Source: Paragordius varius
Lineage: Eukaryota; Animalia; Nematomorpha
Direction of reading: 5' to 3'
DNA length: 64,000 nucleotides
Assembly: GCA_964247055.1 (NCBI GenBank)
Contig: OZ176056.1
Span: 4,402,001 to 4,466,000, forward strand
Positions 120 through 31,411 of the stretch are shown here, one piece after another. Under the pieces are notes generated by a model that did no database searches, was not told the DNA's origin, and saw only the letters and a list, made by a program, of their open reading frames with translations. The position numbers and the translations under genes were made by a program. The number at the start of each line of letters is the position of its first letter. Within the stretch, counting starts at the first letter, position 1.

Positions 120-3100
120 GACATTCCATAGCCAATGGCTATTTTAACGACGAAAATACGAACAATCATATTCCGATTTGGCCAACTTTAAACCATAAAA
201 ATCCAGGTAAGAACATATATCTTATATATATATATATATAATATAACCATTAATAATAGAATAAATTTTAAACATTAAACTTTATGCACAATATAATAAT
301 TTCTTATGTTTTGCCCCTTTTATAGACTTATTTCCTATAAACTATGATTTTATAAACATTTTTGTCAATTATGAAGTTTCATATTTTTTGGGTGGCGTGT
401 TAGTCACCCTTGAACCTTACTAAGCTATATTAATCAACACCAATAGATTGGCAAAATATGGATAAAAGTATGGGTAATAGCCATGCCATTGGAAATATCA
501 CAACGAACCGAATTGATGAAGTTTATTCAAAGCCTAAGGCATACAAATTTACTAAGAACGGTTTCCCTACTATAATATAATTATTATTGATCCAATAATT
601 TTTAATTATGTATGCACCATGATTTTTTCTTCAGATTTAGACTCAAAATTAAATAAATCTCGTACGGTTTTGGCAAGTATTATTTATTAATATAACAAAT
701 TTTAACCAAATTATATCGTACCTGATATAGAGGTGAAAACACGATCAATTCCTGATTCCAACTTTATTTTAAAGATTAATGGTAAAATATTTTAATATAC
801 ACGCTTTGTTAGTATTATTATGTATATATATACTTTAATATTTCTTAGAAAAAATCATTTTGTTACTTATCTGTTCAAAATTTAGATAGCTTCCAAAATT
901 AAATTAACATTTTTAATTTTTGAATAAAGCACCTCTCAGATAAGCATATTAATAACATCCGTATTTATTTCAGGTCCTACTATCCAAAAAATTAAAAAAA
1001 AAATTTGATTATGAAAATTAAAACCCAAGTAAATGGAGAATCCTACTATTGTTAGTTTTAATGAGTAAATAAATTAAACAGTCATTAACTAGCATATATT
1101 AAAATTAAAATTATTTTGTCTCGTTTGGCAGTAAAATGGTATTTTGCTAGAAAATCAAATTTAATTTACAATTTTAATTTAAATTATATTGCCCTATCTC
1201 TACAATATTAAATAAATTCTTAACAATACCCAGAAATGAATCATCTAATTTGAATATTTACTTTTTTGTAAAACATAAAAATCTATATGATACAATATAT
1301 GGAAGAATAATAATTATTTTTTTAATATTAATTTTTGTCTTGAACAACAGGTAAATTCCAAACAATACATGATAACCATAATGATTATATAGCATATAGT
1401 ATATTTGCAACGATCATTATCGTTTAAAGCATTTTTTAAAATTTTACCTCAAATGTGACATAACTGACTTAGAGGTCAAGGAAAACTGGTTTTTTACTTC
1501 CTTTAGACATCAAAATATTACATCAATATAAGTGGTAACAAAAACAAAATCCTTAAAAATAAATTTGTTCATAGCGATGTCGATTTTGTGTTTTATATAA
1601 AAGATTTTAACATTATAAATGTTAATTAAGCTTATAATTATTTTAGATACTAAAGATATCACGGCAGAGGTTGAAAAATGGATTCAGGACAAAAATATAT
1701 CCGAAAATATTCCCGGTCAGCACTTATAATTTTTGTGATACAATTGGCTAAATTCATATGATATGCTAATTTTTTACTTTGATTGATTTTAGAATTCAAC
1801 TATACAAAGTTATTGGTTATGGCACCCAAAGATAAAACAAAAGGTTTATAATAATATTGTTAAATTAGCTAAAAAAGCAATCAATTTTTTTTTGAAACAA
1901 GGAAATTTATATTAGATTATTTATCACCAATTCAGCTCGTATTTATCTAGTTTAACTCTACTCTATAAATATGTTAACAATGAATAAATATAAATAAAAA
2001 ACCCTAAATACTATTATCTTGATCAAAGAAAAATAAATGTTATCTCCGCTTCTGAAAATAAATTAATATATTTTGATAAATTTAGACCGGGTTTTAAAAT
2101 CTCTTTGGATTATATAATTTCAATGATTAGGCTTGTTTATGACACTTATTTTTTCGATTTAGCTATTTTTTAAAATTAATTGCCTTAATTTTTTAATTAA
2201 AAGGAATTCAAAATAATATTCAATAACCTTTTATTCTGTATTTTTTAGAGATATCTGATATAGTGGCAAACATCTCCCATGCTACCAATGTCAATGTTTC
2301 TGAAGATACAAATACACATGGTTTAATGAAAATTAATAATATATTTTATTTTTATTACATTATATTTTATCAAAATTAGACGTTGCTTTAAGTAAATTTG
2401 ATTATAACATGCTTAAACTTACTGATATAGTATTACAAATTGGTAATTTTTTTCAATTATATAAATGAGGGTTATTATCCAAAACATTTCTGAGGCCCGT
2501 GAGAAATTTCAAATACAAAATTTTACGAAATTAGAAAAAATATCCTAATAAATTTTCTGATAAATTTTTCCGAAAGCCATTTGAGTTAAAAACCCTGATA
2601 AAGATTGCGTCTTTCTCGGAATTTTATAATGTAAAAGATAGGTCTGGTATGATATGAGAAATGCAATCAATTATAAAAAATTCAGCTTATATTTTTTTAT
2701 ATATATGTAGTTTTTTTTCATTAATTCAAATTTTGCTTTGCTCCATATTTTATAACAAACAGCACCTAAGATTTTGTTATATGATATAAATCTAATTACT
2801 AAGAGGCCCTGTGACACTCTGATTAATAAGGTGACCAGATTTTTTGAAGGAAAAAGCGGGACAAATCTGAGAAGGGAAAGAAGGGTCGTTGGGGGGTACA
2901 ACCAAAAATTTTTATTCATATTGTAATATTTATTTATTAACAATACACTATAAATATAAAAAAATTTGTACCTTACAAATTGTTTGTACCATATTCAATA
3001 TATTTACATGTGCATGAACAAAGGGTGAAGTGATTGGAATATTCTAAAAAAAATAAATAAAGACGAAATCATCAAAAGTGCGCCGAATGATGCAAGAAGC

Positions 3101-6100
3101 GGCACAAAATATATTTTTAACAATTTAGCGAATAATCTTAATCAAAACATTATTGGCAGATACACAACGCTATTCAAACAGCTACTGATTTTTTACCCCT
3201 GGATGTGGAAAATATAGATGTTAAAATGCTTAGACATGAACTGTTGGTTAGCTTTTTTGCCAGCGATTGAAATATTTATAAAAATATGATCTCCTAGAAT
3301 CCCATTTTTTATCACAGAACAAAGGTTCAAGTTACAAGTCAAAAAAAGTTAGAAAATAATTTTATACCATTAATCGCAATATTATAAAGCATCCAGAAAA
3401 ACAAGGCTCAATGAATAGCCAGAATACAAAAATGTATTATACAAATTGAAACGATTATTTGGAACACAAGACAGTGCACAATGACACTTTTTTATTAAGC
3501 CTCATTATTAAATAAATATAATGATTGAAAACTTATATTATGGACAACAGAAAAAAATACGTAGGATAGAAATAATAATCATTTTTAAACAAATTATGTT
3601 CCATACAATAATATTTTAATTTGCAATATCTTTACCTGAACCACTGCTATTGAACGCGTTCCACAGTAAATTAAGCAAGGACATGGAATCAAATTTAAAT
3701 GTTGAATAAAAGCCAATTTGATGTGTTCAAATATAATTTGAATTATGAAGACTTATACAATTTGAGCAATTTTGTTTATTTTTTAACACCAAAACGTTAA
3801 AGAAAATATTTTTTTCTTTGGTATATTTTTTTGTTTGAGTGAATGCGTTTTAGCAGACTGTCATCATTTTTTAAAATATTGTAGAAGTCTTCACAAGAAT
3901 TTGTCAAATTATATTTGACGGATAAAACGGCCTTTAAAGTTTCAACATTAAAATTTGATTTTTTCGATGTTTACACCTGATTTACTGTGGAAAAACGCGC
4001 TCAGTAGCAGCGTTGGTTCCAGGTAAAGATAGTGCTAATTCCACAATTTTTAAAGTATTAGTATGGAACATAGTTGGCTTCAAAATGATGAATTATTTCC
4101 AACCATTTCTTTTCTACTGATATTTTCCTGTCCATAATTTAAGTTTTTCATTACTAATATATCCTATAACTAATGAAACTCAGAAAAAATATGATTTTCT
4201 GAAAGATTAATTTTTGAGAATTTTTGGGAAATCAAATGATTTTTGAACATCGCACCAATTGAATTCTGATTTTAATGTTATGCAATGAAAATGATCAATT
4301 TCATTGAATTGCGTCGTCCAGTCGTCTAAAAAATCTTTACAGTTTGTATAAAACATTATTATATGGTACAGGATATCTTGGCGATTTATTAAGCCTTGTT
4401 TTTTTAAATTATTTATTATATTGCGGATGGTTAATGGTATAAAATTATTTTCTAACCGTTCTTGACATTAAAATTTTAGGTTACTAACTTCATTGGCTAC
4501 TTCGATTGCCGAAATTTCGTCACCTTCTATAAATTTAATAATATTTTGAAAGAAAGAAGCTTGATTATGTAAGAATTCTAACCATATTTTTGAGAGAAAA
4601 CTTTTTTAAAGTTGTAGGACATTTGTACTGTGATAAAAAAAGATATTGAAGGATCATACATTTTTAAAATTGTTTCGATAGCTGGCATAAAACCTATATA
4701 ACGAGTACAATAACCAAGCATTTTTTGAACTTCTGCATTTTCACAGAATTCTTTATGCGTTTCAACACGTACCGTGTTTATATAAAAATAAAATATTTTA
4801 ACTACTTTTTCCATATCTAGGGGTAACAAATCAGCAGCTGTTTGAATAGCGTTGTGTATGATATCCGCTGCACACCCAACGTCAATAATGTTTTGATTAA
4901 GATTATCTGTTAATTTATGAAAAATATTTTTTCTTCCCTCCTTGCTTTTCCATAGAAAGTTCGTATTGGTGTTGTCAGTGCAATATGCGATAATTTTGTC
5001 TTTTAAATTATTTTTTTCTAGAATATGCATTAACACTTCGATTCAAATTGGGGTATCTAAATACCCCAGACTAAATTTATATTAAAATTTTTAAAAAACT
5101 ACTGAAAGAAACGGTCCCAATTTAAATTTATGCTTCTATCCTGATAAATACTATATAAATATGTCAAAATATCTTGATAAAATTTTGTTTTGAAAAAAAA
5201 AGCTTCATCTCAAACTACTTCGACGCCATTTTTATTTTACAAAATTTTTGCAAAATATCGTCTTCATTTAATTTTAAGGGTAAAACTAAAGCTTATTTTT
5301 AATATAAATCACATCTAACATTGATAGAAATAGAAAAAGCGGTTTATATTTTATTATTTTTTAATTTTACAATTTGACACATGTCAAGTTGACTAAATTT
5401 TTACCTTTCAGTTTTAGCTCAAAATAAGTAATATCAAGTATTTTTGAATAAAATTTTTTATATATTTCGGTTTATTAATGTTATATAAGTGCAAAATTTT
5501 GCCATGGTTTTGATTGCTTCCATACTTTTTAAAGTATTTGATTTTAAACAGGCCTGGGGAATCCAACAACCCCAATTTGAATCGAAGGACTAAAATGAGT
5601 GTGTTGTATCCAAGTGTTAATGAAGTAAATATTATTTCAAAATTTTCACCGGGTAGAGAAATTCATTCTAAAATTATAATTCTTACTCCTGTTTCTGAAT
5701 CAAAATATCTTATTAAAGTGGGAAATAATTTTGTTTCATGGTGATTTGATGCATCAGAGTATGGGGATAAGAAATTAATTTTTAGCAAATTTTTTTGTAT
5801 TTCAGTAAATGCATGTGGCGAAAGGACATTGCACACAATGGCTTCAGCCTTTGTACGGGTACATGTAAATTTTTTATGGAATAACGTGCGAATAACCTGT
5901 GAGGTACAGTCCATAGATCTAAAGGAATGATTGTGATTAACGGCGTGAAAAGATAACACGCCCTCAGCTAGTGCCTAATTCTTTTCATCCTCTCCAAAAG
6001 CGGTTTTTCAAAAAAAATCGTCCATTTTTTAAGATGATGCCCCCATATCGAAAACATTTTTATGTTTCTGTGTTTCCATATGCTTTGTAACATCATGCTT

Positions 6101-9100
6101 GCCGCCATGTGCTAGGGTAAATTCCCCCTCGCATATAATACATTTAACAGATGATTCATTCTTCGTTTTTTTGATAAAAGGAAAACCTTTCATTAATTCA
6201 TCGTTGAATTTACAACCTCTTTTTGTGGTCATATTTTTTAAACTACTATTAGCATAATAAATATTATATTTTTTGGAATAAACGTGTAAGGTACCGATTT
6301 GTGGTATCAATTTGTGTTTTAAGCAACCGATTTGTGGTAGGTATCTTTTTAATAATGTTGGCAAGTAATAAAACTAAAATATTAGTATAATTAATATTAT
6401 ATTACCTTAATTTCTGGAATAAACGTGTAAGGTACCGATTTGTGGCATCAATTTGTTTTTTAATCTAGAGATTTGTGGTATTAACTTGGATTTTGATAAT
6501 GATGACAGTAGTAGGAAGGAAAGTGTATAATTATATAAATTTGAAAAAAATAATTTTTATTTAAAAATAAAAAATTTAAACGGATAAAATATTTGTAATA
6601 AAAAAATTTTTTTTAGATAATCGTGAAAAAGCAGGACATTTTAAAAACGTAGCGGGACGCGGGACAAGGTGTGAAAAGGCGGGACTGTCCCGCCAAAAGC
6701 GGGACGTCTGGTCACCTTATGTATTAATCACTTTTTTTTACTAAAATGGCTTTTAAAATATTTTAGGTGGGTACTCAGGTATATATTTTCAACCATCCCG
6801 AATCTTAATTTATTATATATATAATCATTATTTTACATTTTCCGTATAAATCGTTTTTTTGAAAACTGGTTTCTTTAAAATTAATACTGTTTTAATTGGA
6901 AATTAAATATAGATCAAGTGATTGAAAAATATATCCTATAACTTATGATAAATTGCATATATATTTTACAGTAATTGGCATCTTGTCTTGTACAATCGGA
7001 GCAATAGCTACCACAACTACCAAAATAAGTGCCCAAAGTATAAAAATCTTATTGAATCTATGATGTCCAATGTTACTTTTTTTATTAATAATACAGCAAA
7101 TATTAGATTTTGAAGTTGTTTAATCATTAACTATATATTATATATATATAGAAGAAATTTTTCTAAAAATTTTTAGTTTTTAAGCATCATTTAAACCCTC
7201 CTGTATTCTCTAAGATCAATAGACAAATTAGAATGTATGGGAATTTTAGTTTTTTAGGAATGGTATATTGATTTAATAAATCTGCAACTTGTGGCTATTT
7301 AGAGTGTTGAAATATTTAGAAAAAAGTTTGTTATAAAATGTTAAGCCTAAATTAAAATTGGTTAAAGTTATTTATTTTCGATGTAATTATTTAAATCAAG
7401 TGATCAGTATATTAGTAAACCAAAGTATATCCAAAAGTCCAGCACACAAAAAATTACCTCATGTAATGTAGACTGGGTCCGAAATCGGGAGGTATAAAAA
7501 TAACTTGATGAAATATATATATAAATTCTGATAAGAAAATATACCAGGATTATCATGGTAGTGCTTTTGGTTTTGGTCCTTACGAGAGATTTAAGCTACT
7601 TACAGTTTTTTGTAGGTGCTCCGTATTAGAAAATGGCATAATTTGTGCATTAGTTAAATAAAATTTTTATGATAAAAAAATATATTATACACTATTAAAA
7701 ACCAATTTTTTTTAGATGCAGGCTCCAGTTTCATATTACGCTTCTAAAATGGGCTTCTTAGTAAAATAATGACGGGATAATCAATTTATTAAATATGTGC
7801 TAAATTTTGTCAATAAAATTTTTTTAACAAAATGCATACACAAAAATTTGATTTATATCTTAAAGCGATTTACCGTTTTCTTCATGCTTTAAAATAGGAA
7901 AAAGTACACTTTAACAAAACTTTGCTAAAAATTGAATTATTGCAAAAATGTTTTTTATTAAATTATTTTTTTATGTCAAAATTTAGCATGTATTATGAAT
8001 TTGCCGCGCAATCAAGGCATTTTGCGTTTATTTTTAAAACTGACCATTTTAGAAGAGCGAAAAAATTAGGGACTTTTTTATCGAAAAATTATGATATATT
8101 TATCTTTGACCAATAAACATCATTACAAAAAATGTACTCAAATTTTGCCATTTTTTTGATAGGGCACCTACCACAAAGGTTTCAATAACTTTATACCACT
8201 CGTTAAAGCCAAGAAAGCAGGATTAATTCTAATATATTTTCCTATCATATATATTTCATCAGGTTATTTTTTGTGGACACAGTTTATATAGAAATGTATT
8301 AAAAATTTGGTTAAAGATGGTTTTGTAAAAATCCTTAAAAATATTGCATTGAACCTCGTATTCCCATCTTGGGCAGAATCATTGCTTATTTCTTGGATTG
8401 CATAATTAATATAATATAAAAATAAACCATTCTATGATAATACAATGTACAAAAATAGCGATAGAAAAATGTATCAGGATGGTGCTTTTTCGGGGGCTTA
8501 CGAGTGACATAAGAAAGTTATTTATACTTTTATGGTATGTTTCCATATCAGAAAATGACAAAATAGAGCTATTTTATGCAATAAGTTTTTTTTATAAAAC
8601 TAAATGCTTTATTCCAAAAAGAATCACTAAAATTTATTTTAACTCCTTAAAAGCAAAACAGTATTTTTATAATATTTTAGATGTGGACTCCAAAAGTCCC
8701 GAATCTTTGCTCTTCTAAAACCGGCTAGTTTTTTAAATGAATGCAAAATTGTTAGATTGGGTGATTGAATAGATAAAAAAATATTTAAAAAACCTAAGTT
8801 TATTTTTTAGCAGATTTTATTGAAGCGCACTTCATAGGTATGATGAAAACGATATAAAAACACTTTTAGATATGGTAAAAACACTTTTAAATATAATTTT
8901 ATGATGGTAAACATTTTTCTCACCTCAGATTTTGATTAAATATTTTGTCTTCGAATTTACCTCAAATGCGTTTTTATATAGAAATTAACCAAAATTTAAA
9001 AAGCAAAGAACCTTTATAAAATTTCTCAATAGATAGAAATGTTCAGCATCATTAAATTATATAGAAAAGTATTTTTATAATATATAAGATCGTTATACTG

Positions 9101-16335: not shown

Positions 16336-16374
<39 letters not shown>

Positions 16375-18446
16375 TATTAGGTTCGATGAATATGCTCGAA
16401 TGTAACATATTTTTATAATTCAAACAAATTTTGGCTTATTTAAAGTTTTAATTGTTGCATAAAACTCTTTCTCCTCTCAAAATGTCTACAAAAATATCCT
16501 GACCAAAAATTTATCGGATAGGAATGTATATCAGAATTGCTTTTCGTTTTAACTCTTACGATGGATTTAAGAAAGTTATTTACACTTTTGTGCTAAGTGC
16601 TCCATATCAGAAAATGACCGGCCATTTTTTAAATAACTTTTTTTGATAAAAGCTGAATGTCTTATTCCAAAAAATGTCACTACATCATAAACTGCAAATA
16701 AAAAGCAATACAATATTTTAAAAATATAATTTTTTGATGTTGGCTAATGGGGTTCTGAAGCTTTGGCAAAATAAATGCAAAAATGCGATTGGGCGATAAA
16801 AATTTTAAATATATGTTATGTTTTCAAATTAAATTTCTAATGCCTACTTTTTTCTTAATTTCAATTAAATATTTTTGAGCGTAATTACTGCTATTTTCAG
16901 CCGTGATATCAACGGTATAACTATAATATTAAGTCTAATTATGAGATGCTGAACATTTATAACTCGACTTTGGTTTAAAAATTCGTTCAACATCGAATGT
17001 AGGTTGCATTAAAATTTGAAAACGAACCTACCGTCAAATAAAATGAAGCTATATTAATGTTTAACATCATACAATAAAAAATCTTTTTTAATATCCATGT
17101 TTTTATTTTCTTGAATCCAAATGATGTTAAGTACGCTTTAACGAAATTTTGCAGAAAACTAAATTTTTAAACAAATATATTTCAAATATTTTGTAGACAC
17201 ATATTAAAATTTAGCATATATATAAGTTTTAATGCGATCCTGGGTTTGCTTTTATTTTAAAATAACTAGAATAATTAAAAAGAGAGAACAAATTTGAAAT
17301 AGCCTTATCTTATAATTTTAGCCTAATATTCAGTTTATGCGATTTATGTTATCAGTATTTGGATAAAGTATCAAGCTTTTACAAAAAAAATTTCTCTAAC
17401 AAAATGTACCCAAATTTTGCCATTTTCTGATATGGTGCAGTTATTATGCAGGTGATAAAAAGTTACTTAAATTTAAGGGTCAAAATCAAAAGCTGACCAT
17501 CCAATTACACTCATCTATATATATATATATATATATATTATAAAGTTTTTAATCCATAATATACATTTTCTCTTTATTTTATTAGCAATATAACTTTATA
17601 GGGTTTGATTTAAGATAATATTTTTTTAACGTGAAAAAGTTTCGCTTTCATTTAAAATAAATGCAAATTTTATATATGGCCCAATATCCCAAAGTAATTT
17701 TTGAGTTTTAGTTTTTTCCTCTGGTCTACTAAACAATCCAAAGCCTAATGTGTAAAATATAATTAGGAGGGTGGATTTACGAGTGTCCTAATATAATTTT
17801 TTGATATATAAAATAATAATTAATTTAATTTAATATAGTGTATCGTCATCTAAGTAAAATTTGTTTCTTAATTATCAAAAACATTATCTATCATATCCTA
17901 TTCAGATACCTTTCAAAGTAAAGTTGTTTTATATATTAAATATCTGTGTTGCTTATCATAGGATTGTCCGATGTGGCACAAGGTTACTTTTTCATACTTT
18001 ATTTTTAAGATTTAAACACTTTGTCAGAGGGTATTTTTCCCGCCTAAAAATTATTATTAAATAAGAAATGCAATCTTTCCTGGAAGGTAGAATTTATAAA
18101 ATATATTATATGGTCATTTATAAAATATAGAGGCTCAATATTTTTCACTGAGTAAGATGATTGAAAATAAACACATTCTAACCTAATTTTTTATAGCTGA
18201 GCCTGAAGCATTGGCGGGTATCATAATCTGATCTAATTACCAATTTCTTTTTTTATAGAATTAAAGGAATACCTTACACGTTAGTTTACGTTCTTATATT
18301 AAAAATCTATATAATAGAACGCATAAGTGTGTTTTTAAGTATGAATTATTTTAGAATATTTTATCAATAAATTTGTTGTAATTAGCTAGGAGCCATTTCG
18401 GTATCAACCAAATTTTATACATTTAGCTGCCGAAATCGAAAATTAG
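120..18446 (+). CDS. Unknown micro-exon gene A (5' end outside window); about 29 symmetric phase-1 exons, Ser/Gly/Ala-rich middle, helical C-terminus
   Basis: Hand-called AG|exon|GT, all internal lengths multiples of 3 and phase 1-1, no stops on joining: 120-206, 326-391, 447-560, 635-676, 731-781, 1351-1398, 1647-1715, 1793-1843, 2249-2320, 2380-2442, (6767-6778?), 14118-14387, 14838-14864, 14920-14940, 15112-15141, 15168-15188, 15416-15430, 15481-15501, 15543-15557, 17839-17853, 17906-17917, 17962-17982, 18010-18030, 18066-18086, 18131-18151, 18197-18217, 18259-18279, 18386-18400, terminal 18427-18446 (TAG). Many exons have same-order peptide homologues in gene B. Some exons are probably missed. 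Confidence 0.8.
2990..3790 (+). pseudogene. Second, more decayed copy of the same hAT transposase on the opposite strand inside the element
   Basis: The plus strand reads NNLNQNII...IHNAIQTATDFLPLDVE, matching the minus-strand ORF NLNQNII...IHNAIQTAADLLPLDME; 3628-3770 mirrors the dimerisation-domain DNA at ~3880-4035. Boundaries are approximate. Confidence 0.75.
5034..5616 (+). mobile_element. TTAA-flanked piggyBac-like MITE (family R1) inserted in the hAT transposase
   Basis: TTAA target duplication at 5030-5033 and 5617-5620; CACTT termini; internal inverted repeat TTCGATTCAAATTGGGGT placed asymmetrically. Removing it restores the frame ...IFTSLMHILEKNN. Confidence 0.85.
6970..7294 (-). 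CDS. Two putative spliced exons of a nested antisense gene with hydrophobic segments
   Basis: Exons 7197-7294 and 6970-7057 have canonical AG/GT and matching phase 2, joining to PQVADLLNQYTIPKKLKFPYILICLLILENTGGFNKIFILWALILVVVVAIAPIVQDKMPIT. No family recognised. Confidence 0.45.
7500..9500. repeat. Two adjacent degenerate R7 copies
   Basis: Shared motifs (gatgaaatatatat...ctgata.gaaaat.ta.cagg; ttttagaagagc.aaaaaatt.g.gacttt; aaattttgccatttt) in both orientations; boundaries approximate. Confidence 0.55.
10314..12865. mobile_element. Ty3/Gypsy LTR retrotransposon remnant arranged as a fold-back with two inverted LTRs
   Basis: Arms 10314-11058 and 12118-12865 are inverted near-copies. Each holds the integrase C-terminal tail, a polypurine tract (AGGGGGGG..AAG) and a ~327-bp LTR starting TGATG (10640 on minus; 12538 on plus) with an internal (TA)n. 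Confidence 0.9.
11046..12115 (-). pseudogene. Disrupted Gypsy pol fragment (RNase H end, H2C2 Zn-binding domain, integrase core)
   Basis: RWINMINEYDFEISHQKGAQNRADYLSR; LHSGH...YWP...CESCQ; WERLHID followed by a frameshift into GPVDGLYWLLIIDSASKW; IVSDNASYF; PYHSKSNGMVER. Stops and frameshifts are present. Confidence 0.9.
16494..17510. repeat. Degenerate R7 copy in an intron of gene A
   Basis: Left end aaaatatcctgac... and right-end motifs aaattttgccattttctgatatgg match the other R7 copies. Confidence 0.55.
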
Positions 18447-19691
18447 CAAATTATATGTTTTAAGGGTCATATTTATTATTTATAAGCAGCCAGACAATAA
18501 ATTATCTTTGATTTATATTTATTTTACATCAAGTTGGTTCTTAAGGGTTTTAAAAGTGTTCTTAAACACTCTTACAATTTTTTTACCTATACATTTTATC
18601 AATCCAACTATATATCATGCATGTGTGCTATCATTAGCTAATATATATATCTATATATATATTAATCTAAACTTTTGGATTAATTACAACCTTTTCTCAT
18701 TATAGTTTTCTAGGCGTAATTAGCGATTTTTTGCCTAAACTATCAGTGAGTTATATACCAAAATAAGCTTAAAACAAAAAGCTGTTTTGAAAATTATAAT
18801 AAAGGAAAAATATATAATTAGATATTAGGTTAACAACATATATATAAATATTTGCTAAAATATACTTTAACATAAAAGTTTAAGGACAACTTGAAATGTT
18901 TAATATCCAACTTTTTAGATTTAAGGACACTATCGACATTAACGTTCATTTAAATGTTAAAGACACTATTGAAGTGTAAAAGTTTTAAAATATTATTTTT
19001 ACCTTTATGAAATCCAATTTTTAAAATAAAAATATAAATATGGGGATGATCAAGATGATTATTAAATGCTAATTATTGGGTTATTTGAATTAATCAAATA
19101 AATTTTGTTATAAACAAAATATTCATAACTATATAAAGAATAATTAACCAATTTAAGGTAGGTGCATCAATTAGTTGTGATACGATAAACAAACGAAAAT
19201 TTTATAATGCTTCATTGGGAAATTAAATTAAATATACAGATCAATATTTATAAATAGGTAAATTGGTTAATTTCACCCTCTGGTTTCCTGTGACATCAAG
19301 AAATTGCAATAATATGGGACAAACCATATCAGGATAATGAATATTTCTATGATATGCGGTTAAAATGCAAGAAAAAAAATTTCATTTTTCTGTTATCCAA
19401 AATATAAAAAATTTCAATTTATCGCACATAAACTTAGATTATAATAAAAATAGAAATAATCAATCGATAAGCTTAAACATAGCCTTCGCCAAAATTTTGG
19501 CATAAGGAAAACTATTTAGCTATTTCTTCTATCTATTTTTGATGGTGGCTTAATTTAACAAAATAGCACCCTAATATATTCCATTTGGTTATGTGAAGAA
19601 TTTGCTTTAAACTATGTTTAATGATACCCATTTTGCAGTGAAAAGATCTAAGCTAAATTTTTTATTTTACACGGAATATGTTAAAAATCAG

Positions 19692-22600
19692 GATTTGTTT
19701 TCCAGGTGTTTAAGCTATTCAAAAAAGATGTTCCAGTTGTAATCAACAAGGCATACCAGCGCTCTATAAATTCCCTTCTTACACGAAATATACCTGCAAA
19801 CACATTTAATATATTCTCTTGGGGAAAAGGTATTATTTGATTGTGGTCTATTAGAGGGTTAAGTCTTACCCAGTGAATTATTTAAGAGGTTGACAAGTTA
19901 TGCTGTTATCCTTTATTAAATCTTTATAATTTATATAGGGGTTTACCGAAAATTCGCTTCAAAGCCAAGTTATTTTTATATGGTTTCATATTTAATAAAG
20001 AGAGGAGCTAAATAAAAAAATGGGAGTTTATGAAAGAAGTAGCCTTAAATTCACAAATCTTTATGTGATGGCTGGTATAAGGCTTGCCCAGCGGTCATTA
20101 AAAAAACAAAAATTATTCATATAAAATATGTAATGACTTAAAACTTTATTTTGACAACTGCGAAGAGGGGTGGAGCTCTAATCTGCGGTTTATTACAAAA
20201 AGTCCTAACACATTTACCTTTTAATCTTGTTAAATATTTTCTCTAGGTCTATATGAAAATTGCCCTAAAGCAACGTGTTATTTAATATAATGGTTTATTT
20301 TTCAGAAACTAAAGATCTACTCTGGGGGCAATTTAAAAAAGGACTGGACTTAAATTAAAATTAATATATGTAGTTAAAACCATGAATGCACGCACAACCT
20401 ATCATACCTTTATTTTAAAAACGTTGAAAAATATTTGAAGGTAGCGAATTTTTCAAGGGGTCGAGGCCTAACCAACGGTTTATTTAATACGCTTTATTAA
20501 GCTGCCTTTGTATTAGAACTAGTTAAAACCTTATTCAATATATATGGTTTGGGTTTAAATTGCCTTAATATAACCTTATTTTTTAAATGGCGACACAAGT
20601 GTAAAACGGTTAGGCGTGTTAATCGGTTAATTTTAAAAAAGTTCTGTAAACTTATACCAATAAAATCTATTTAAATTTTTTCCATAACTGGGCGAAATTC
20701 AGTTAAACAAAATTAATTTTGATATAGGCTTAATTTTTAATATGTCGTTATAAGGGGTGAGGTAAATATGGGGGCTAAAATAATGGTGGCTATTTTTGGT
20801 GCATTCTTAAACAAATTATTTAACTTGAATGGGACTACCTCCCTTTTTAAAATATTATGTCAAAGAGATTATTTTTGGGGACTTTGTTTTATAAACCCCC
20901 ATTTTTACAAAGTGTTCCAACTTAAGTCAGTATATTTAAATTCAAAATCGTTTATTTTATAAAAAATTCGAAATCCACATTTGTATTATTGCTTTTAAAA
21001 TATTTTATACCCAGTATGAACAAAATTTAAGAATACAAGTAGTTAAAACTATACACAATTATGAACTATATGTTAGCCTGTATATAAATAAGGAAATAAG
21101 AGTTAAGGTTTTAATTCTTAACACTAAGCTGTTGCTGGACAAAACTATTTTCAATGAATTAAAATATTATCCCCGAAATGGAAAAAAACAATAAACATGA
21201 ACTTTAATATAGCTAAAGTACAATGGCTTTATCTAAATTTGGCCAACTCAAAACAAACATATAAAAAGGGTAATTGGAGTTATTTTTTATTTTCTAAATA
21301 CTTTACTATTTATCATGCTCGGTATTTGCGTATGGATAGGTATGCAATAAATATAAATTATAAATTTAAAAAACATTTTTTCTACCGATTTGAAATCGTT
21401 AATTCTTAACTATTTTTTTACTGAATTGACATTAGGAAACATGACAGTTTTCTTGACACAAAATACATAAAATATGGAATCTATTGAAAATATTAATCAT
21501 TACAATAAAAAAAATTGATAGTGTTTTAGTGATTATAATTGAATTAAAAATTAAGACACTAAAAGCTCCCTTTAAGTTGAATTTACTTGTTGAATCAATT
21601 TATCCATTTTTTATAGTCTTTATCGGGTTTCCAACAAAAATATCTTCAGGGGCCATATTTTTACTTAAGATTTGGCGAGAATTATATTGAATTTATAACA
21701 GTAAATTTAAAAAAAAATTAAAATATATTTAAAAAATATCACCAATTATTTTAGAATTTTGCTAATTCTTTTCTATTTTGCTTTAAAAATTAAAATTTAG
21801 ATTATTTAAAATTTTTAGTTTACAATTTTTAAATTATTTCATAATTTTTTATATATTTGCGGAAGCACATATCGCGGGCGCCGTATATCTCTTAGTCTAC
21901 AAATTTATTTGAACTCAGATTTTAGCGACACAATCTCTTATATTATTTTATTTTAAAATATAAATGCGGTAAAATATTTGATATTTACACTAATTAATTA
22001 ATAATACAATCGGTTAAATTATATGCATAACATAAGCGAGATAAGAAAACTTTTTTATTTAAATCATGTTATTTAATTTCTAGGTTTGATTTTAAAATAT
22101 AATCAGTAATAAACTAGGTCCGAAAAAGTTAAGCCATACATATTTTTATTAGCTAACAATAAATATAACACAAATCAACCACTTTTTAATGTTAGTTGTG
22201 ATTTTAACATTCGATTCAAATTGGTATAATACCCCAGACTAAATTTGAGTTAGGATTTTTAAAACTACTGAGGGAAACGGTAATTTAAATTTATGCTTCT
22301 ATCCTAATAAAAATTATATAAATATGCCAAAATATCTAAATAAAATTTTGTATTGAAAAACAAAGTTTTATGTCAAACTACTTCAACGCCATTTTTATTT
22401 TAAAAATTTTTTGCGTAATATCGTCATCATTTAATTTTAAGGTTAAAATCAAAGCTAATTTTTTATTTAAAATCTAATATTGATAGAAAAAGAAAAAGCT
22501 GTTTATTTTGTAATTTTTCTATTTTACCAGTGCACGCATGTCAGGTTAACTAAATTTTTACCTTTCGGTTTAATCTTAAAATAAGTAATATCAAGTATTT

Positions 22601-23508
22601 TTGAAAAAAAAATAATATTTTGGTTTTTTAATATTGTTTTAAGTGCAAGATTTGCCATCGTTTCGATTCTTTCCATATTTTTTGAAGAATTTAATTTTAA
22701 ATACCCCAATTTGAATTGAAGGACTAAGTTAATAAAAAAATCTTTAGTTTTAGTAAAACAAAAACACGGTATTTTGCAAAAATGTTAAAATGGCGTCAAA
22801 ATAGTTTAATATGGAGCTTTATTCCCAACTATATTTAATTAATCGAGGCATAATTAAAACCGTTCTTTAAGTAGTATTTTTATAAAATCAATATAAAAAT
22901 GGTCTGGAGTCACTAGTTATTCCATTTTGAATTGAAGACAATCTAAAACTTAAACTTTTCTAGCTAATTACAATACCAAAATAACCAATACCGCGTTTTG
23001 TTTTGCCATGTCGCATATAAAAAATACCTTTTAAAAGATCCAAAATTATTTATTTTTGCAAAATTTCGTTTTTTTCAAACAGTTTGTCTTACTATTCCAA
23101 CATTAAACTCACTGCCTGCTGAAGCTAACGGTGACAGAGAGGACGAAGTAAACACACTTTCAAATGATATACCTAATCATCCAATGCTAAATGGTATAAT
23201 ATATTTTAAAGTCGCCCACAATTTGCATAGAAAAAAATTACTGTTGATTTTCTGAGTAAATAATTATTCCTTAAAAGTGATTTAAATTAAACTTTATGAA
23301 AATTAGTTTAGAATTGATGTTTTATTTAATGATTTTTAAAAGATTGGGCAAAACTTCAACAAAGGCGACACCAGCAAGTCCTAGGGATTGCGATTGGAAA
23401 CATAACAAGCAATAAAATTGACCAAATATATCCGAATCAGTTTAATTTTACAAAGAAGAGTAATTATATAAAAATTATTTACTAATAACATAAAATAAAT
23501 TTTAAAAT

Positions 23509-23572
<64 letters not shown>

Positions 23573-26500
23573 TTTGCAGAAACAACTAAATCGTACAAAA
23601 GCAAATTTACAAAGTATTTTAATTTAGTTTTATAAAAAATAGCTATTTTTTCAAAATAAGGAAATTTTACTTATATAATGCCGCATGTATTTGAAAAATG
23701 ATTATTTATTGAAAAGAAGATGCGAATACGAATTTTTTCAATAAAATTACACAAAGTATAATCCAGATTTAATTATATCTGAAGTGTAATATCAGCAAAT
23801 TTTTTTCATATGCTTTGAATATTATTTTAGAATAATGCTACCTTAAATGCATTTTAATGGTCTAACACTATAGTATTCCAATTTGCAACACAGTACTATA
23901 TGTTAAGTACAGCAATTTTTTTAAAATACATAGCTAATATATTTCAGATTACTAAAAAATCGGTTAAGCCTATCGATTTACCCCACTTTTTAGCTCATCT
24001 TTAAACTGTTGTAAAAACACAATTATTTTTTATGTTTTAAGATTGGTATTTTTTTATCACATTTGCATAATTTAGGAATAAAGACTAGATCTGTTACCGA
24101 TGATACCCTTGTCATACCCATAAATAGTAATTTTATCAATAATTTGGTATTGATTTCTAATTTCTGTATCTATTATAACACATATGTAATAAAATTTAAA
24201 ATTGTACGGACAAAACGTAAAAATATAAAAACGAATATTTTTTTTTCAAAAGATAACCATATCATTTTAAACTCTAATTTTTCTTATATAATATATTAGT
24301 TTGCAATTGTAAATTATATTAATAATTTACATCTCTTTATATGACTATGTAGTTTAAATAAGGGGTTACATTAAGATAAATTAAATTCATAAATTACCGT
24401 GGTCTTTTAAAAAAATAATTGTCATTAAATTTTCACTTTTTTTCCTTATAATTTCAACTTTTACTGTGTTTTAACCTATCAGGTACAGAGAATATTACTC
24501 AACAGATTGGGAGATGGCTATATCATCACAACTTAACCAATGATGAAAACACAAGTAAGACTTAATAACATACCTCCTAAGTGATCCATTACATTTTATA
24601 ACATCTAAATTTTTAAGGTTGCATAATATAAATTTTTTCGATCGTTCAAGCTGCTTATATATGAAATATCCTACAATAACAATTTCAGAACTAATATTAT
24701 AATACAAATATAAAATTGTAAATTAAATTTGTATTTACCGATTAAATATTCTTTCGTTTCTAACGCAAACTACTAAAGTGATAACGGCCACTGTCCAAAT
24801 GAATTGATCACCAATCACCTTTAAAATCTAAATAAAAAATTTCATTAATTTTGATTCGTTAATTTATAATCATGGTTAGTTATTTTATATTTTTATTTAT
24901 AACCAATAGGTTAAAAAAGTTTATATTAAATAGGAGCCTCATAATTTTTATAAGTCTTATTCGTTCTAAAATTTAAATCTTTATACATCAAACATACATA
25001 TATATTTTACAGATTATAAATTTATTCATAGATTTCACATTCACAAAACTACTTGTGGTGGCACCCAAAGACAAACGCAAAGGTTATATACATGATTTTC
25101 TTCTAAACCCAAGAGTTAATGCCAATGGCTTTTCTAATATAAAATTTTTATTATTTATAATATAAACCCAGATGCCAATATATCTAATGTAATTGATGAA
25201 ATAAACTCCCCTAATCCAATACCGCCAATAAATACTGAGTCCGAAAGCTCTTGGGAAAGTTTATATTCATATATAAAACAATTAAATTGTATATTATTTG
25301 ATTTCTGATAAAAATCTTTTGTGATCACAATTTTTTTTTAAATTACTTATAATATCGATTCCATTGTTACATTTTAGTCTTAACCGTCGGTAAATCATTT
25401 TTAAATAATAAATTTATATCATTTTTTAAGATAATTTATTATCTTTAATAATGTTAAACCTTTGTTAGTCTTGGGATTTGGTAAATTCAATATATAATCA
25501 CATATATATATAATATAATAAAATAATAACTTTGATATGATTTATAGGCGAAATCGCAGGTTATTTATCACCAATAAATTTGCATTATATTTAAACCTAG
25601 TGTCAAAAAACCTATATAAATTTTATAATTTATTTTTATAAATTTTAATAATAATGAACAAAATAAATTACTAATCCTCTATTACAGTTAAAATCGAAAT
25701 TGTTATACATACAGATAAAACGTAAAAACATAAAGGCCATTAAAAATATTAATCTAAACTTGATGTCTATCATTGTTTTGAACTTGAAAGTAAATACATA
25801 TGTAAATTGGTAAACAATCATATGTATAACTTTTTTCAGTCAAGAGCAACTTCAACCGAACGCAACATTTTCAAGCAAACGCAGCATTTTTCATTTAAAC
25901 ATAACATTTTTTCAAGCTAACGCTTTGCCATTCAAACGGAACCAAAATTGTTGCTTTTGAAAAGATTTTGCGTATGGTTGATGTTGCGTTTAGTTGATAA
26001 AGCGTTGCTTACTGATAAATGGTATAACAATCATAATTAAATGATTTGTATAGGAAAGTAAGGTTGATTTAAATTTATATTTTTACATTTTGTCCGTATA
26101 GCTTTAATAATACTGAACCTATCAATTTTTTACTTTTAATTTAATTTCCATATCACTTAAAGTCGTTGGAATGGTTGGTATTATGGGTGCGGTATCTCAA
26201 TTGTCTGCATCTGTCGGAGGATCTGTAGTAGCTGGCATCGCAGGTTATTGGTCAATAAAATATTTTTTTTTAAAAATTATATTTTTTTAACTTTACATTC
26301 AAATAACATAGGTCAGATTAAATAGTTATACCATCAGTCAAAAGCACATTTATTATCGAAAGCGAAACAAAATATTTTTTAAACAAATACAACTGAAAAA
26401 ATGTTGCTTTTGCTGAAAAATGGTATATAAATATGTGGAAGCAAATAATTATCCCTGTAAAATAATATTATAGATTTTCAAACGTTTATTCAAAATAATA

Positions 26501-28406
26501 TATGAGAGGGGCCAGCATTGAATTAAATTAAACTTATGATACTCTTTTTTGCGACACGTTGTATAATCACACATATTCAGAAGGGCTATATCCAAGAAAA
26601 ATATATATATAAAAATGGAAGTAGCCTAAAAAATATATTGGCGAAAATGAAATTTATCACTTATCGTTTTTAAGATATATTCAGTTATATTTCATTTAGT
26701 TTCATCTTTTTAGGGTCTACTGTGGGTTCAATAAACTCATTGTCAACTCTAGCTAGAGGTAAAATATTTTTTTTAGCATAACCTAAAAACTACCCAAAAA
26801 TGTAATATTGACTCAGTTATCCATTATTTAATTTTAATTTGGACACCTGCTCGTCAATAAACTCGCAACTATTGTTAGTGGAAACTGATTTTGTCGCTAT
26901 CTAAAATTATCAATTAATGACCAAATTTTTTTACAATTTATCAATTATTTGCATTGCCTTATATTTATCACAACACTAAATAAAATTATATCATTAAAAA
27001 TACTTTACAATAAATGACCCTACAGAAAAAAATATGTCAAATTCGATAAGGGTATATAAGTTTATGGCATGTTTAGAATCATAAATATTTAATATTAGCA
27101 ATCGAGATAACCTAGATTTTAAAACCAATATGTTTGTCCAACTATAAAGTATTCATCAGTTATCACATGTATATATACCTAATAATTTTTAGAGTTATTT
27201 AACTTTTTTGTTAATACATAAATATAAATAGTTTTTTTTACCATATATTAATCACAAAAAGGAAGCGTTGGTAGCATCGGAACCGTCTCATCTATATCAG
27301 GGAATAGTTTAGCTGGTTCGATAAATGCAATCTCCATGGCATCTTTAGGTGCAATTTCAGCAGCTGGGTCTGTGGCGGCCTCTTCCTCAATCCTTAGTAA
27401 TTCAGTAACCGGCCAAGTTTTTTATAATCCAAACCCTTCGATATCTGAAAGTTCAACAAGTATTGCTGATCGACTTTCATCTCAAGCGGAATCGGAATAT
27501 ACAGTTGATTCAAATGGTCAACAGCAGAGTCTTAATTCACTTGACAACTGGGAAACAGTTTCATCTGACAGTATAATATCAAATTTTATTTTATTTAACA
27601 TACTTACTTTGGTTAGTGTTAATTTAGAGTAAAATTTTCAGATAAGTTATTTCAAAAATTTATCCATTACCCGACTCCACAAAAGGATTTTTGTTGTAAA
27701 AAACATATTACGGTATTAGCCAATCTTATTAAATCTTTAAGTAAAAGAAAACTTTTGATTCTACCTTTCATAGATATTGGTATTCTGTGCTATTAATTAT
27801 AACCTTTATAGGTATTGACGTCTTATCAAATCCGGAAAGTTGTATGTGATTAAATTTTTAAAATATAATTTGTTTAAGAAAAAACTAATTTTACCGACGT
27901 CTTTATGCATTTATAGTAACTCCTAATTCTATACCCGCCGAATTAACTCCACTTCAAATGCAGATTATGCAAACAATATATATTTATCGTTTATGTTTAA
28001 AAAAATACATTAAAAATAAAATTATATGAACAAAACGTAAAAATTAAACGATAAATATTTTACTCTATACATATATATAATTAATCATACTTTTCTAAAG
28101 TTGGAAATTGGGTGTGTTACCAATTCACATCTCTATACTCTATTTTGGAAACATAAAACGATGAATTATTACATAAGAATTGACTCATAACAAAAAAATA
28201 TTTGTCTTTTAATATTTACGTTTTGTCTCTATATTTTAATTTTTATTGTATTAAAATTTCAAAATTCATATAGTTTTAAGAGCGGAAATAGATTCCCTTG
28301 GTAAAGTTATTTATATTTGATAATAAATTTTAAATATCTAGCAAGTTATATTGGAGCATGTTGTATGTATTTTTTTCACAATAGATAATTATTTAATTTA
28401 TTTTTT

Positions 28407-28459
<53 letters not shown>

Positions 28460-31411
28460 AAATATGATATATATTTAATAGATCATAATATGTTACGGAA
28501 TACTTTGATAAGAGCTACCCAAGGTATATTGTTAATTTATATTTATGTCCAAAAATTTTTTTATAAAAAAATTATGTTAAAATCGTTGACAAGATATTTA
28601 GCCAGATATTATGGATTAAAGATTTATCTAAGAATTTATTGTAATAATTTTAGCCACAAGAATGCACGGTAATTTATATAATTATTTTTTTTTCTTAACA
28701 TTTAATAATTACTATATATTATATAAGAATTGGAATTAAAACCGTTTTGATTATAATATTAAGCATTTTCTTTACAGATTCTACATATCATCAAAAACTT
28801 ATTCAATTAAAATGTTTAATTACAAAAAAAAATAGTTTATAAAATTCACCGGTTCCATGTTGATATTTTGGATTGCTTGCATGGTAAATTTTTATAAAAC
28901 GCTCTAATGGACAAAGATAACTTCAAAAACGAATAAATGTATAAATATTTAAAATTTTCTAGTAAAAACCGCTGTTGTGATTTAATTAACTGTTTTGAAA
29001 CAATGTTAATAAAATCTTTTGAAACGGCTTAAAAAAAATTTGATTACTTCCGTAAAACATGGGTTTAAATCCCTGCATTATGCCATTGTATAAAAATATT
29101 TTTAAATAAAATTTTTTAATCAATTATTCTTTTTTATATGTCATTTAGTGTTAACCTCGTCATTCGAAGGTATAATTATATCAATAAAATTAAAAAAAAT
29201 AATTATTTAAATTATATTTTTAATAAATAATTTGATTATGGGTAATAAAATATTTCTATTTTAAAACAAGATTTTTTTATTTTATTTTATAGGTGGTAAT
29301 CCTAATCAAAAATGTTCAAAAATAAACTTAAATTAGTTGATTAATTCACCATTTTATTAAGTTAAAGCATATATTTTTGATCCGTTTTAAAAAATAATTA
29401 TGATGTAGTCAAATAATTAATTTTTATATGCTTTCTGAAGTAATTTAAAATTCACATATAATATATTATATATATAGTATTTCAGCAACAAGGTTTTTTG
29501 TTATTTTTTCAATTAATATTTATTTTTAATTATAATAACGAATTTTTATATAACTTTAGGAGTTTCCAATATGCTTCGCTGTAATATATTATTATAATTC
29601 TTATAACGCAAATAAAATTAAATAAAACTAAAATATTTTTTTGACTTATAGTTTATCGAGAAACAAGTTTTTATCTAATGTAAAGTTATATAAATATAGA
29701 TATGTTTACAGGTATGGTTTAAAGTTGTGACATATATAATCCCTTAGAATTATCTGAAATAGCAGAGGGTAGTATTTTCCAATCACAATGCTTCATTTTA
29801 AATTTATATGAATTTATTAATTTTTTCTAAAATAATTTAAGATTTATCAACCTTGGGACAAGGTATATCTTAAATTTTAAAAATTAATTTATTCATTTTT
29901 CACATTTTTTAGAAATGGAGGCTTTCTTTGAAGGTAAAACGTTTCTTAAATAATTTATGTTGAATAAAAATATTAATTTTATTTTTAATATTTTTTTTAT
30001 TTAGAAGCACTAAATTTACCTAATGGTACTTTTTTATTATTATCGTCAAAATATTTATAAGGAAAAAAATGTGAGCCGTTTTACAGTAAAAATTGAAATA
30101 ATATACGGAAACGTTTAAATATAAAGACAAATATTTTTATCTAAAAGACAACCGTACTTTTAAACCTTAATTTTTCCTATGCATGAAATTAATTACAATC
30201 TTAAAATATAGAATAGAATGTCTTAGTAATATGTATCCCTATTTCACACTTTGCCATTTTAAATATATTTATAAAATTCAAGATTTAAAAAGTATGGTTA
30301 TCTATTAGAAAAAAATATTTGTCTTAATATTATTAGGTTTGTCCGTATAATTTCAGATTTTACTGAAATTCGGAAAAATTCAATTAATTCATTTAAAATA
30401 TATTCCACCGCGGTTTATTTAATACTTCAAAAATTATTATTGCAAGAATTAACGTTTTAAAATTAAGAAAACATCTTAAAAATAATGCCAAGATAAATGA
30501 AACTCATGTTGTCTAAATGTGATCTTCAATATTATATCATTTAAAAATACCATACTTTTTTAAAATTAATATTATTTATATAACATTAGAATTTTTCTTA
30601 TTTATTATGCTGTGCTGAATACTATGGGCCCACAAATTTGTGTTTGTTGGAATTTAATTTTTTGGATATGGAGAGTCAATTATTTTTAACTTTTTAATGG
30701 TCACCCTTAAATAATATTTATTGAGTAAAAAAATATTATTTTTTATAATTCTTTATAATAGCCGCTCCGGAATCCTTGTCGGGTATTTCCATTATTCTTA
30801 TATACATTTTAAATTAAGTACCTTTCAAATAATAGATGATTATATATAAAATTGAAAATCAAACCCGTTAATTAAAATAGGGCCATATGAAAATCAAATG
30901 CATTGTTTATAATAAAAATTTTCAATTTGTGTAAATAGAATTTTTATTATTAATATAATAAAATTTTGGAAATTAAATTTTATAAAAGCATGATTCTGTA
31001 TTTATAATTTTTTTATACAGATATTAAGGAATACTTAGAGGGTAATTATTATAATTATACCATTTTTCAGTCAAAACCAACAGCTTTTCAACCAAAAACA
31101 CCACTTTTTCAAGCAAACACAACATTCTTAGTTCCATCTAATTGTAAATGTTGCGTTTGCTTGAAAAATGTTGCGTTTAGTTGAAAAATGGTATATTCTT
31201 TAAATACTTTTATAATTTATATTTTTTTTAAAAATTCATAATTATTTATCGATAATAGATGTTATTAGCTCGATTGTTGGTATATTATAAAAAATTTTTT
31301 ATTGTGTTGAAACAAATATTAAAAATACCTTTTTAATTTTTTTGTTTTAGAACGGGGCAGATTCAGTATATTATAATTGTCTAATTCTTTACAGATAATA
31401 TTGAACCATAA
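19692..31411 (+). CDS. Unknown micro-exon gene B, tandem paralogue of gene A (start codon not located)
   Basis: Symmetric phase-1 exons: 19692-19829, 19864-19896, 19939-19968, 20003-20074, 20247-20276, 23083-23193, 23343-23459, 23572-23613, 24483-24554, 25032-25082, 25172-25258, 25378-25389, 25548-25559, 26163-26243, 26714-26758, 27262-27570, 27812-27838, 27917-27988, 28274-28300, 28342-28362, 28482-28523, 28654-28668, 28778-28813, 28836-28883, 29293-29313, 29652-29666, 29700-29711, 29748-29768, 29842-29862, 29913-29933, 30005-30025, 30762-30782, 31021-31041, 31351-31365, terminal 31395-31411 (TAA). Homology with A: AIGNITSNKIDQIY vs AIGNITTNRIDEVY; FTFTKLLVVAPKDKRK vs FNYTKLLVMAPKDKTK (both 51-nt exons); LRAEIDSL vs LRREIEAL; SYIGA vs NYIGA. 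The 19.7-20.3 kb exons have no in-window paralogue and are less certain. Confidence 0.8.
22208..22728 (+). mobile_element. Degenerate R1 MITE copy
   Basis: Colinear similarity to 5034-5616 along its length, with TTAA at both ends. Confidence 0.8.
23515..23568. repeat. (TA)n microsatellite directly abutting an exon acceptor
   Basis: Perfect TA run of ~54 nt followed by CAG|exon. Other long runs at ~10382, 12766, 16340, 17506, 28391, 31751, 36680, 39488 and 62648. Confidence 0.95.
24574..24827 (-). CDS. Two putative spliced exons of a nested antisense gene in an intron of gene B
   Basis: Exons 24739-24827 and 24574-24690 with a 48-nt GT-AG intron in matching phase 2: ILKVIGDQFIWTVAVITLVVCVRNERIFNRSEIVIVGYFIYKQLERSKKF... 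Confidence 0.45.
25825..26026. mobile_element. MITE family R3 (termini TATACCATTT(T)TCA; internal aaacgcaacatttt repeats)
   Basis: Inverted ends and internal repeats; further copies at 26327-26426 and 31056-31195. Confidence 0.65.
28020..28250. repeat. Inverted-repeat family R4 (tttacattttgtccgtata / acggacaaaacgtaaaa)
   Basis: The motif pair recurs in both orientations at ~24200, 25700-26110, 28020-28250, 30090-30360, 48370-48680, 50440, 52350-52420 and 53810-53870; boundaries unclear. Confidence 0.5.
31056..31195. mobile_element. MITE family R3 copy in an intron of gene B
   Basis: TATACCATTTTTCA...TGAAAAATGGTATA inverted termini. Confidence 0.75.

Follow-up and report, generated by a model that had tools for sequence, protein, structure and literature searches.

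Two tandem genes of phase 1 exons

We analysed a window of 64,000 nucleotides (nt) from the nematomorph Paragordius varius (contig OZ176056.1, positions 4,402,001 to 4,466,000). It carries two consecutive plus-strand genes, G1 and G2, that are assembled from many short exons, all joined in phase 1. Judged from sequence, these are genuine, intact tandem paralogues. The G1 model has 28 exons (120-18446) and its 5' end lies beyond the window, position 120 being the first base of an internal exon. The G2 model has 32 exons (23083-31411), is without a located 5' end, and finishes at 31411 with the final base of the stop codon. All 58 introns are in phase 1, and the length of each internal exon in G1 and G2 is divisible by 3. 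Exons of up to 36 nt make up 19 of the 28 exons in G1 and 21 of the 32 in G2, contributing 30% and 28% of the coding nucleotides, respectively.

Reading of the sequence gave exon-like blocks between a T-rich ...YAG acceptor and a GTA donor, all with phase 1 splits. Exon candidates were all AG...GT stretches with an open phase 1 frame and a length divisible by 3, and the G1 and G2 halves were compared as peptides without a splice-site filter. After this paralogy pass a few boundaries were corrected and the transmembrane exon of G1 (6972-7037) was added. This exon sits amid transposon remnants in the 11.7-kb stretch from 2431-2442 to 14118-14387. The GC content of the window is 0.17-0.37 per 2 kb, typically about 0.25, and (TA)n arrays and transposon remnants are abundant.

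Paralogy and controls

The first ten exons of G1 and G2 correspond one to one (87/111, 114/117, 42/42, 51/51, 69/72, 51/51, 72/87, 12/12, 12/12 and 66/81 nt). Further colinear partners have lengths of 30/27, 21/21, 21/21, 15/15, 12/12, seven times 21/21, and 15/15 nt. The frames are open through all exons and the terminal exons reach stop codons at matching places. The conceptual proteins of 391 (G1) and 468 amino acids (G2), both without their N-terminus, give one end-to-end alignment with 31% identity and an E-value of 5e-54, a value that is inflated because similarity helped pick some exons. Inclusion of exon 6972-7037 brings the alignment to this E-value and lifts the 19-residue Kyte-Doolittle maximum of G1 from 1.60 to 2.48.

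Open AG(N21)GT candidates as such are no more frequent than chance, at about 54-87 for each frame and strand of the 64 kb, and control frames contain runs of 5-6 within 600 nt. For this reason a micro-exon can be trusted only where paralogy or context backs it. Plus-strand phase 1 yielded 10 same-length colinear pairs that score at least 15, and the five control combinations of frame and strand yielded 2-4. Thirty exons were chosen on paralogy alone; among these, the acceptor position -3 is C or T in 25 (background 48%) and never G, and 24 have A at the donor position +3 (background 30%). The upstream tract of these exons is enriched in T (0.53 versus 0.38). Micro-exons have a GC content of 0.37-0.41, versus 0.18 for the short introns. 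Junction codons, which had no role in exon selection, are identical at 4 of 17 aligned junctions and similar at 4 others. Chance AG/GT pairs as the source of the exon pattern are ruled out by these frame/strand, splice-signal and GC controls.

At the DNA level, G1 and G2 have only microsatellites, one shared repeat and one exon in common, and the paralogy is seen at the protein level alone. Since DNA similarity is nearly lost, the duplication is old; yet both copies are open throughout. A scan of the rest of the window for a further paralogue found none.

These results bear on an earlier note on this DNA, which had placed two consecutive plus-strand genes at 120-31411. That placement is borne out, its ends being the start of an internal exon and the stop of G2, as is the claim that all internal exons are multiples of 3 in phase 1-1, to which the 58 of 58 phase 1 introns in both models correspond. 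The homologous exons that it listed in the same order (51/51, 42/42, 21/21, 15/15 and 12/12) are all present, with the 10 colinear pairs standing against 2-4 in the controls. In place of its estimate of about 30-35 exons for each gene, the models count 28 (G1) and 32 (G2); the 5' ends of both genes are missing from them.

Ultra-short introns

Many of the introns are very short: 26, 26, 27, 35, 38, 39, 41, 41, 44, 44, 45 and 47 nt in G1, and 29, 33, 36 and 41 nt in G2. Introns in the micro-exon cluster of G1 measure 26-52 nt, and those of G2 are mixed, from 29 to 736 nt. Retention of a short intron introduces a stop in 16 of 18 cases in G1 and in 10 of 11 in G2; the other three give a frameshift or a 13-codon in-frame insertion. 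Downstream of them, G1 and G2 keep their exons conserved in the same frame, and these introns must therefore be removed.

The same window provides a control in a conserved gene. An SPF45/RBM17-like gene on the plus strand, with its ATG at 43046, has an N-terminus (MSLYEGL..., then ESWGSQIKLLQSQLQLKK) that is readable only with GT-AG introns of 26 and 24 nt removed (43046-43250). It then gives the conserved EGWS..KLLQSQLQ, by comparison with the human protein. A G-patch exon of this gene lies near 47.8-48.1 kb (Pfam E 6e-14). With this control and the stops upon retention, we reject the possibility that the ultra-short introns are artefacts. The exons of the SPF45-like gene are asymmetric, with phases 1 and then 0, so the uniform phase 1 belongs to G1 and G2 and not to the whole genome.

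Predicted products

The two products share a layout that consists of an N-side, a hydrophobic segment, a Ser/Gly/Ala-rich stretch (mostly from one exon of 270 or 309 nt), and a tail encoded by micro-exons. The N-side has about 165-180 residues and is nearly without Cys. It contains 7 N-x-S/T sequons in G1 and 8 in G2, against shuffle means of 3.3 (P 0.035 and 0.006), and some are at aligned places (GNIT; N-Y/F-T ahead of KLLV.APKDK; ANIS). C-terminal to the hydrophobic segment there are none in either protein, whereas 2.1 and 4.5 were expected.

The hydrophobic segment, encoded by exons of 12, 12 and 66 or 81 nt, reaches 19-residue Kyte-Doolittle maxima of 2.48 (G1) and 2.52 (G2) at aligned positions. 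This transmembrane segment has a small-residue, GxxxG-like spacing (IGILSCTIGAIA; GFVVGMVGIMGAV). Both proteins thus have one strongly hydrophobic segment of about 20 residues and sequons on its N-side only, the pattern of a single-pass type I membrane glycoprotein. We infer that the G1 and G2 products are single-pass membrane glycoproteins with the N-side outside or luminal, and the sequon asymmetry suggests that they enter the secretory pathway.

Each of the last seven 21-nt exons corresponds to one heptad. In G1 these are RLSDVAQ/DLNTLSE/EMQSFLE/EAQYFSL/TEPEALA/ELKEYLT/QRISVFL, and in G2 ELSEIAE/DLSTLGQ/EMEAFFE/EALNLPN/AAPESLS/DIKEYLE/DVISSIV. The split junction codon, mostly D or E, is at position 1 and hydrophobic residues are at positions 2 and 5-6. 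A period of 7 gives the top self-similarity in both tails. The fifth unit contains Pro, which is predicted to split the tail into two helices.

Exon inventory and surroundings

The coordinates of all exons are collected in Table 1. The middle micro-exon group of G2 includes four exons with G1 partners (28274, 28342, 29478 and 29560); for the remaining five the support comes from splice signals.

Table 1. Exons of G1 and G2 in the window, with lengths in order of position
Feature	Coordinates	Strand	Lengths (nt)	Remarks
G1 N-side (putative ectodomain) exons	120-206, 447-560, 635-676, 731-781, 1647-1715, 1793-1843, 2249-2320	+	87, 114, 42, 51, 69, 51, 72	Phase 1-1; AG/GT bounds; 1:1 with G2; 7 sequons
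G1 two micro-exons, start of transmembrane helix (VAL-I-LQI)	2380-2391, 2431-2442	+	12, 12	39-nt intron between; G2 has two 12-nt exons likewise placed
G1 transmembrane core (IGILSCTIGAIATTTT...)	6972-7037	+	66	Counterpart of G2 26163-26243
G1 Ser/Gly/Ala-rich exon	14118-14387	+	270	Aligns with G2 26714-26758 and 27262-27570
G1 exon pair	15112-15141, 15168-15188	+	30, 21	26-nt intron, stop if retained; partners G2 28274-28300, 28342-28362 (QLRREIEAL/LRAEIDSL, NYIGAT/SYIGAC)
G1 three provisional micro-exons	15416-15430, 15481-15501, 15543-15557	+	15, 21, 15	Good splice signals; weak paralogue support
G1 micro-exon (SMNMLE)	16381-16401	+	21	Partner G2 29560-29580 (VSNMLR), common AATATGCT core
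G1 exon pair	17839-17853, 17906-17917	+	15, 12	Partners G2 29652-29666, 29700-29711
G1 seven heptad exons	17962..18338; starts 17962, 18010, 18066, 18131, 18197, 18259, 18318	+	7 x 21	Introns 27-47 nt, each giving a stop or frameshift if retained
G1 last internal exon and terminal exon	18386-18400, 18427-18446	+	15, 20	26-nt intron; TAG; layout same as homologous G2 end
G2 N-side exons	23083-23193, 23343-23459, 23572-23613, 24076-24126, 24483-24554, 25032-25082, 25172-25258	+	111, 117, 42, 51, 72, 51, 87	8 sequons
G2 two micro-exons, start of transmembrane helix (LTV-V-LGF)	25378-25389, 25469-25480	+	12, 12	Placed as in G1
G2 transmembrane core, glycine-zipper-like (VGMVGIMGAV...)	26163-26243	+	81	19-residue Kyte-Doolittle maximum 2.52
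G2 Ser/Gly/Ala-rich exons	26714-26758, 27262-27570	+	45, 309	Polymorphism hot spot
G2 middle micro-exons	27812-27841, 28274-28300, 28342-28362, 28482-28523, 28654-28668, 29149-29169, 29293-29313, 29478-29492, 29560-29580	+	30, 27, 21, 42, 15, 21, 21, 15, 21	
G2 exon pair	29652-29666, 29700-29711	+	15, 12	G1 partners
G2 seven heptad exons	29748..31279; starts 29748, 29842, 29913, 30005, 30762, 31021, 31259	+	7 x 21	Introns 50-736 nt
G2 last internal exon and terminal exon	31351-31365, 31395-31411	+	15, 17	29-nt intron; TAA; open frame to stop

AATAAA motifs occur about 40-50 nt 3' of the G1 and G2 stops (18493-18498; about 31449-31460), which is weak evidence as such motifs are common in AT-rich DNA. 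The large introns of G1 contain mobile elements. At 2674-6373 on the minus strand, a transposon-like gene is represented by a series of open reading frame (ORF) fragments without a Pfam match; near 6.1 kb these show a CxxC...HxxxxH motif. The 7.1-kb intron between 6972-7037 and 14118-14387 holds a long terminal repeat (LTR) retrotransposon remnant (10628-12537) whose minus strand encodes two Pfam domains, integrase core and H2C2 zinc-binding (E 5e-8 and 6e-11). Its ORF segments 10757-11080 and 12120-12454 are near-identical and in inverted orientation. A repeat of about 500 bp is common to a G1 intron (5030-5548) and the region upstream of G2 (22204-22701), with 83% identity. In DNA runs its word depth exceeds that of single-copy sequence several thousand-fold, which marks it as a MITE-like element of very high copy number.

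The conserved neighbour genes of G1 and G2 are animal-type. Besides the SPF45-like gene, a serine carboxypeptidase (Peptidase_S10) gene with kb-sized introns lies at 32672-38064 on the minus strand, and three of its exon segments match PF00450 (E 2e-24, 7e-17 and 1e-11). Rfam and tRNA scans gave no matches.

Four DNA runs contain the locus. Their depth is even across introns and exons and they have no splice joints, which identifies them as genomic DNA. In these runs, a polymorphism hot spot at 26714-27898 holds 17 of the 20 listed single-base variants of 22000-27999, a count to be read with the bias of contig-based calling and with a contig depth about 1.5 times that of neighbouring stretches, so that a near-identical extra copy is possible. 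Thirteen of the 20 variants are exonic, though exons make up 17% of 22000-27999; the 45-nt and 309-nt exons together have 11 of these, and the other two are at 23425 and 24551. Seven of the exonic changes are non-synonymous and six synonymous, and none breaks the frame. The 309-nt exon has at least three alleles across two samples and the reference.

Contigs of 151-350 nt with a depth of 2-5, identical to the window at 13000-18600, came from runs that carry the labels of two other organisms. Because of this identity they were rejected as a source of diverged orthologues. Carry-over, or co-sampling of host and parasite, seems a better account of them than related species.

Relatives and comparison with known systems

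Searches for relatives were made with exon pieces. The large exon of G2 had no match in a word search of 5.8 billion proteins, and eight exon pieces gave no match above noise in Pfam at E-values up to 10. The top score in the ESM Atlas, 0.63, is noise. A profile of both large exons, run with HMMER against 1.84 billion representative proteins, retrieved only bacterial low-complexity repeat proteins; these were rejected as relatives since the similarity is compositional, with many matched stretches in each. Neither large exon matched itself among the 1.84 billion representatives. The G1 and G2 products are thus absent from that set, which is consistent with unannotated genes. A collection of 15 billion proteins likewise contains no product of either large exon.

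The architecture can be compared with that of the micro-exon genes (MEGs) of flatworms. MEGs have 'most of the coding region' in very small symmetric exons, encode a signal peptide and small secreted or membrane-anchored products, and vary these by alternative splicing; their evolution is accelerated and they 'appear to be restricted to platyhelminths' (PMC4350168). In S. mansoni their exons number 10-20 and measure 6-81 bp, the introns span 100-5000 bp, and the longest product has 189 amino acids (PMC10526429). G1 and G2 resemble Schistosoma mansoni MEG-1 to MEG-35 in their numerous tiny multiple-of-three exons, which can be skipped in frame. Like these, they are missed by ORF scans and difficult for automatic annotation, lineage-specific and without homologues, expanded by local duplication, and partly amphipathic-helical.

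The differences are also considerable. Micro-exons of up to 36 nt supply only 28-30% of the coding sequence of G1 and G2, so these genes are not mostly micro-exonic, and they have about 30 exons instead of 10-20. Even the partial products, with 391 and 468 residues and a transmembrane segment, far exceed the secreted peptides of up to 189 residues. Many of the micro-exons are located between introns of 26-50 nt, versus 100-5000 nt in MEGs, and Paragordius varius is not a flatworm. The earlier note had called the pair a MEG-like family of unrecognised sequence. Of the likeness, the symmetric design and tandem paralogy stand, and the small micro-exon share, the large membrane-anchored products and the 26-50-nt flanking introns do not fit it. 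That the sequence is unrecognised agrees with the lack of a match of any piece to a known family by Pfam, HMMER, word search or ESM Atlas, and the suggestion that annotation probably misses the genes agrees with the lack of self-matches of both large exons.

In vertebrate tropoelastin (ELN), all splice sites are phase 1:1 and exons act as cassettes (PMC12554196). G1 and G2 are alike in that their splice sites, too, are all phase 1:1, across 30 or so short exons or more, any of which is removable in frame, and in having exons that are structural units. Their sequence is unrelated, without the alternating hydrophobic (PG-rich) and cross-linking domains. Tropoelastin, furthermore, is a secreted matrix protein without a transmembrane segment, most of its exons exceed 27 nt, and it is known to be alternatively spliced. 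Fibrillar collagens have 54-bp exons in phase 0 that encode Gly-X-Y triplets. G1 and G2 share with them the principle of one structural repeat per exon, here a heptad per 21-nt exon, which points to exon duplication; they differ in their phase 1 introns and in having alpha-helical heptads as units. By design, G1 and G2 are at least as near to tropoelastin as to MEGs, and we class them with the symmetric-exon/micro-exon type, outside the MEG families.

Origin and use of the symmetric exons

We consider it probable that G1 and G2 belong to a lineage-specific family of phase 1 symmetric-exon genes for membrane glycoproteins, which grew by exon duplication and is spliced mostly constitutively. Growth through duplication of exon units is the best explanation for both the uniform phase and the layout of one heptad per exon, and duplication of phase 1-1 units would have preceded the split of the paralogues. 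Splicing of the pre-mRNA would proceed chiefly by intron definition, across introns of 26-50 nt, a size class used also in a conserved housekeeping gene. The predicted product has a Cys-poor, N-glycosylated N-side, a GxxxG-like transmembrane helix, a flexible Ser/Gly/Ala-rich stretch and a C-terminal amphipathic tail with a/d heptads. As a guess, this may be a membrane protein of the surface or the secretory pathway whose helical tail serves for pairing or docking. Because exons are conserved 1:1 in the N-side and heptad tail and the introns are very short, mostly constitutive splicing is preferred, with limited skipping at most.

Several points weigh against this explanation. The constitutive mode is what we expect, rather than what was observed. 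About eight micro-exons are provisional, without paralogue support (G1 15416, 15481 and 15543; G2 27812, 28482, 28654, 29149 and 29293), and the E-value of the paralogue alignment is inflated as stated above. The search upstream of G2 for a start codon and signal-peptide exon gave no convincing ATG with a hydrophobic exon, and the 5' end of G1 is outside the window; since no such exon was found, the sequon asymmetry alone speaks for the N-side-out topology. A lone weak candidate for the signal-peptide first exon of G2, at 20768-20858, has a poor donor and was not adopted. RNA-labelled runs of the species, which are few and small (1-30 million letters), contained 0.00 of the sampled G1/G2 words, and in two of them nothing aligned on 13000-18600. 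Finally, the homology searches covered exon pieces of up to 102 amino acids, so a distant known family is possible.

Since all internal exons are symmetric, each is a potential in-frame cassette, and the genes might instead work as MEG-like generators of variants, in which skipping would yield a set of related proteins, surface or secreted, for example at the parasite-host interface. We regard this as possible but unlikely. With 58 of 58 introns in phase 1 every skip stays in frame, and loss of a 21-nt exon removes exactly one heptad, shortening the tail with the helix register kept. The genes form a tandem family, the exon content of the middle micro-exon group differs between the paralogues, and membrane-anchored MEG products are also possible (PMC4350168). 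The hot spot in the large exon of G2, with its seven non-synonymous and six synonymous changes, recalls the accelerated evolution of MEGs (PMC4350168). On the other hand, no isoform was seen and no RNA run contains either gene, a signal peptide was not found, and micro-exons are only 28-30% of the coding sequence. Introns of 26-50 nt would favour intron definition, under which skipping is presumably uncommon, and the N-side and heptad exon sets are kept 1:1 between old paralogues, suggesting that each exon is needed. A more specific proposal is an independent, non-flatworm system of micro-exon cassettes, convergent with schistosome MEGs, in which tandem membrane glycoproteins with 26-50-nt introns and raised allelic diversity would vary ectodomain and heptad-tail length combinatorially; this we find rather doubtful.

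It is very improbable that G1 and G2 are untranscribed or decaying copies left over from a family that once functioned, with exon-like features that persist only because descent is recent. Neither large exon occurs in any RNA-labelled run of the species and transposons occupy the large introns of G1, but those runs are few and small (1-30 million letters), and the paralogues are old, with 31% identity and DNA similarity gone save for one exon. Some 30 exons are still open in each gene, with AG/GT sites and matching stop positions, and the listed G2 variants, six of them synonymous, keep the frame open. The least probable of these readings is that G1 and G2 are remote members of some known, conserved family of membrane proteins, with an ancestral exon structure that only seems unusual here. 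It draws on the limit of 102 residues on the pieces searched, and is opposed by the lack of any match in Pfam (eight pieces, E up to 10), the 5.8-billion word search or the ESM Atlas, and by the HMMER search over 1.84 billion proteins, which gave bacterial low-complexity repeat proteins only.

Significance

Genes that consist wholly of symmetric exons are rare, and the textbook cases are tropoelastin and the MEGs of flatworms. If a further animal lineage has a tandem family with about 30 consecutive phase 1 introns, introns of 26-50 nt, exons of 12-21 nt and one heptad per exon, this would mean that such an architecture is able to arise independently. G1 and G2 would also flag a gene class that is overlooked by ORF-based and standard annotation, and would offer a natural experiment on how the spliceosome deals with 21-nt exons that lie between introns of 27 nt. 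Should exon skipping be in use, surface variation generated by splicing would have a second example among parasites.

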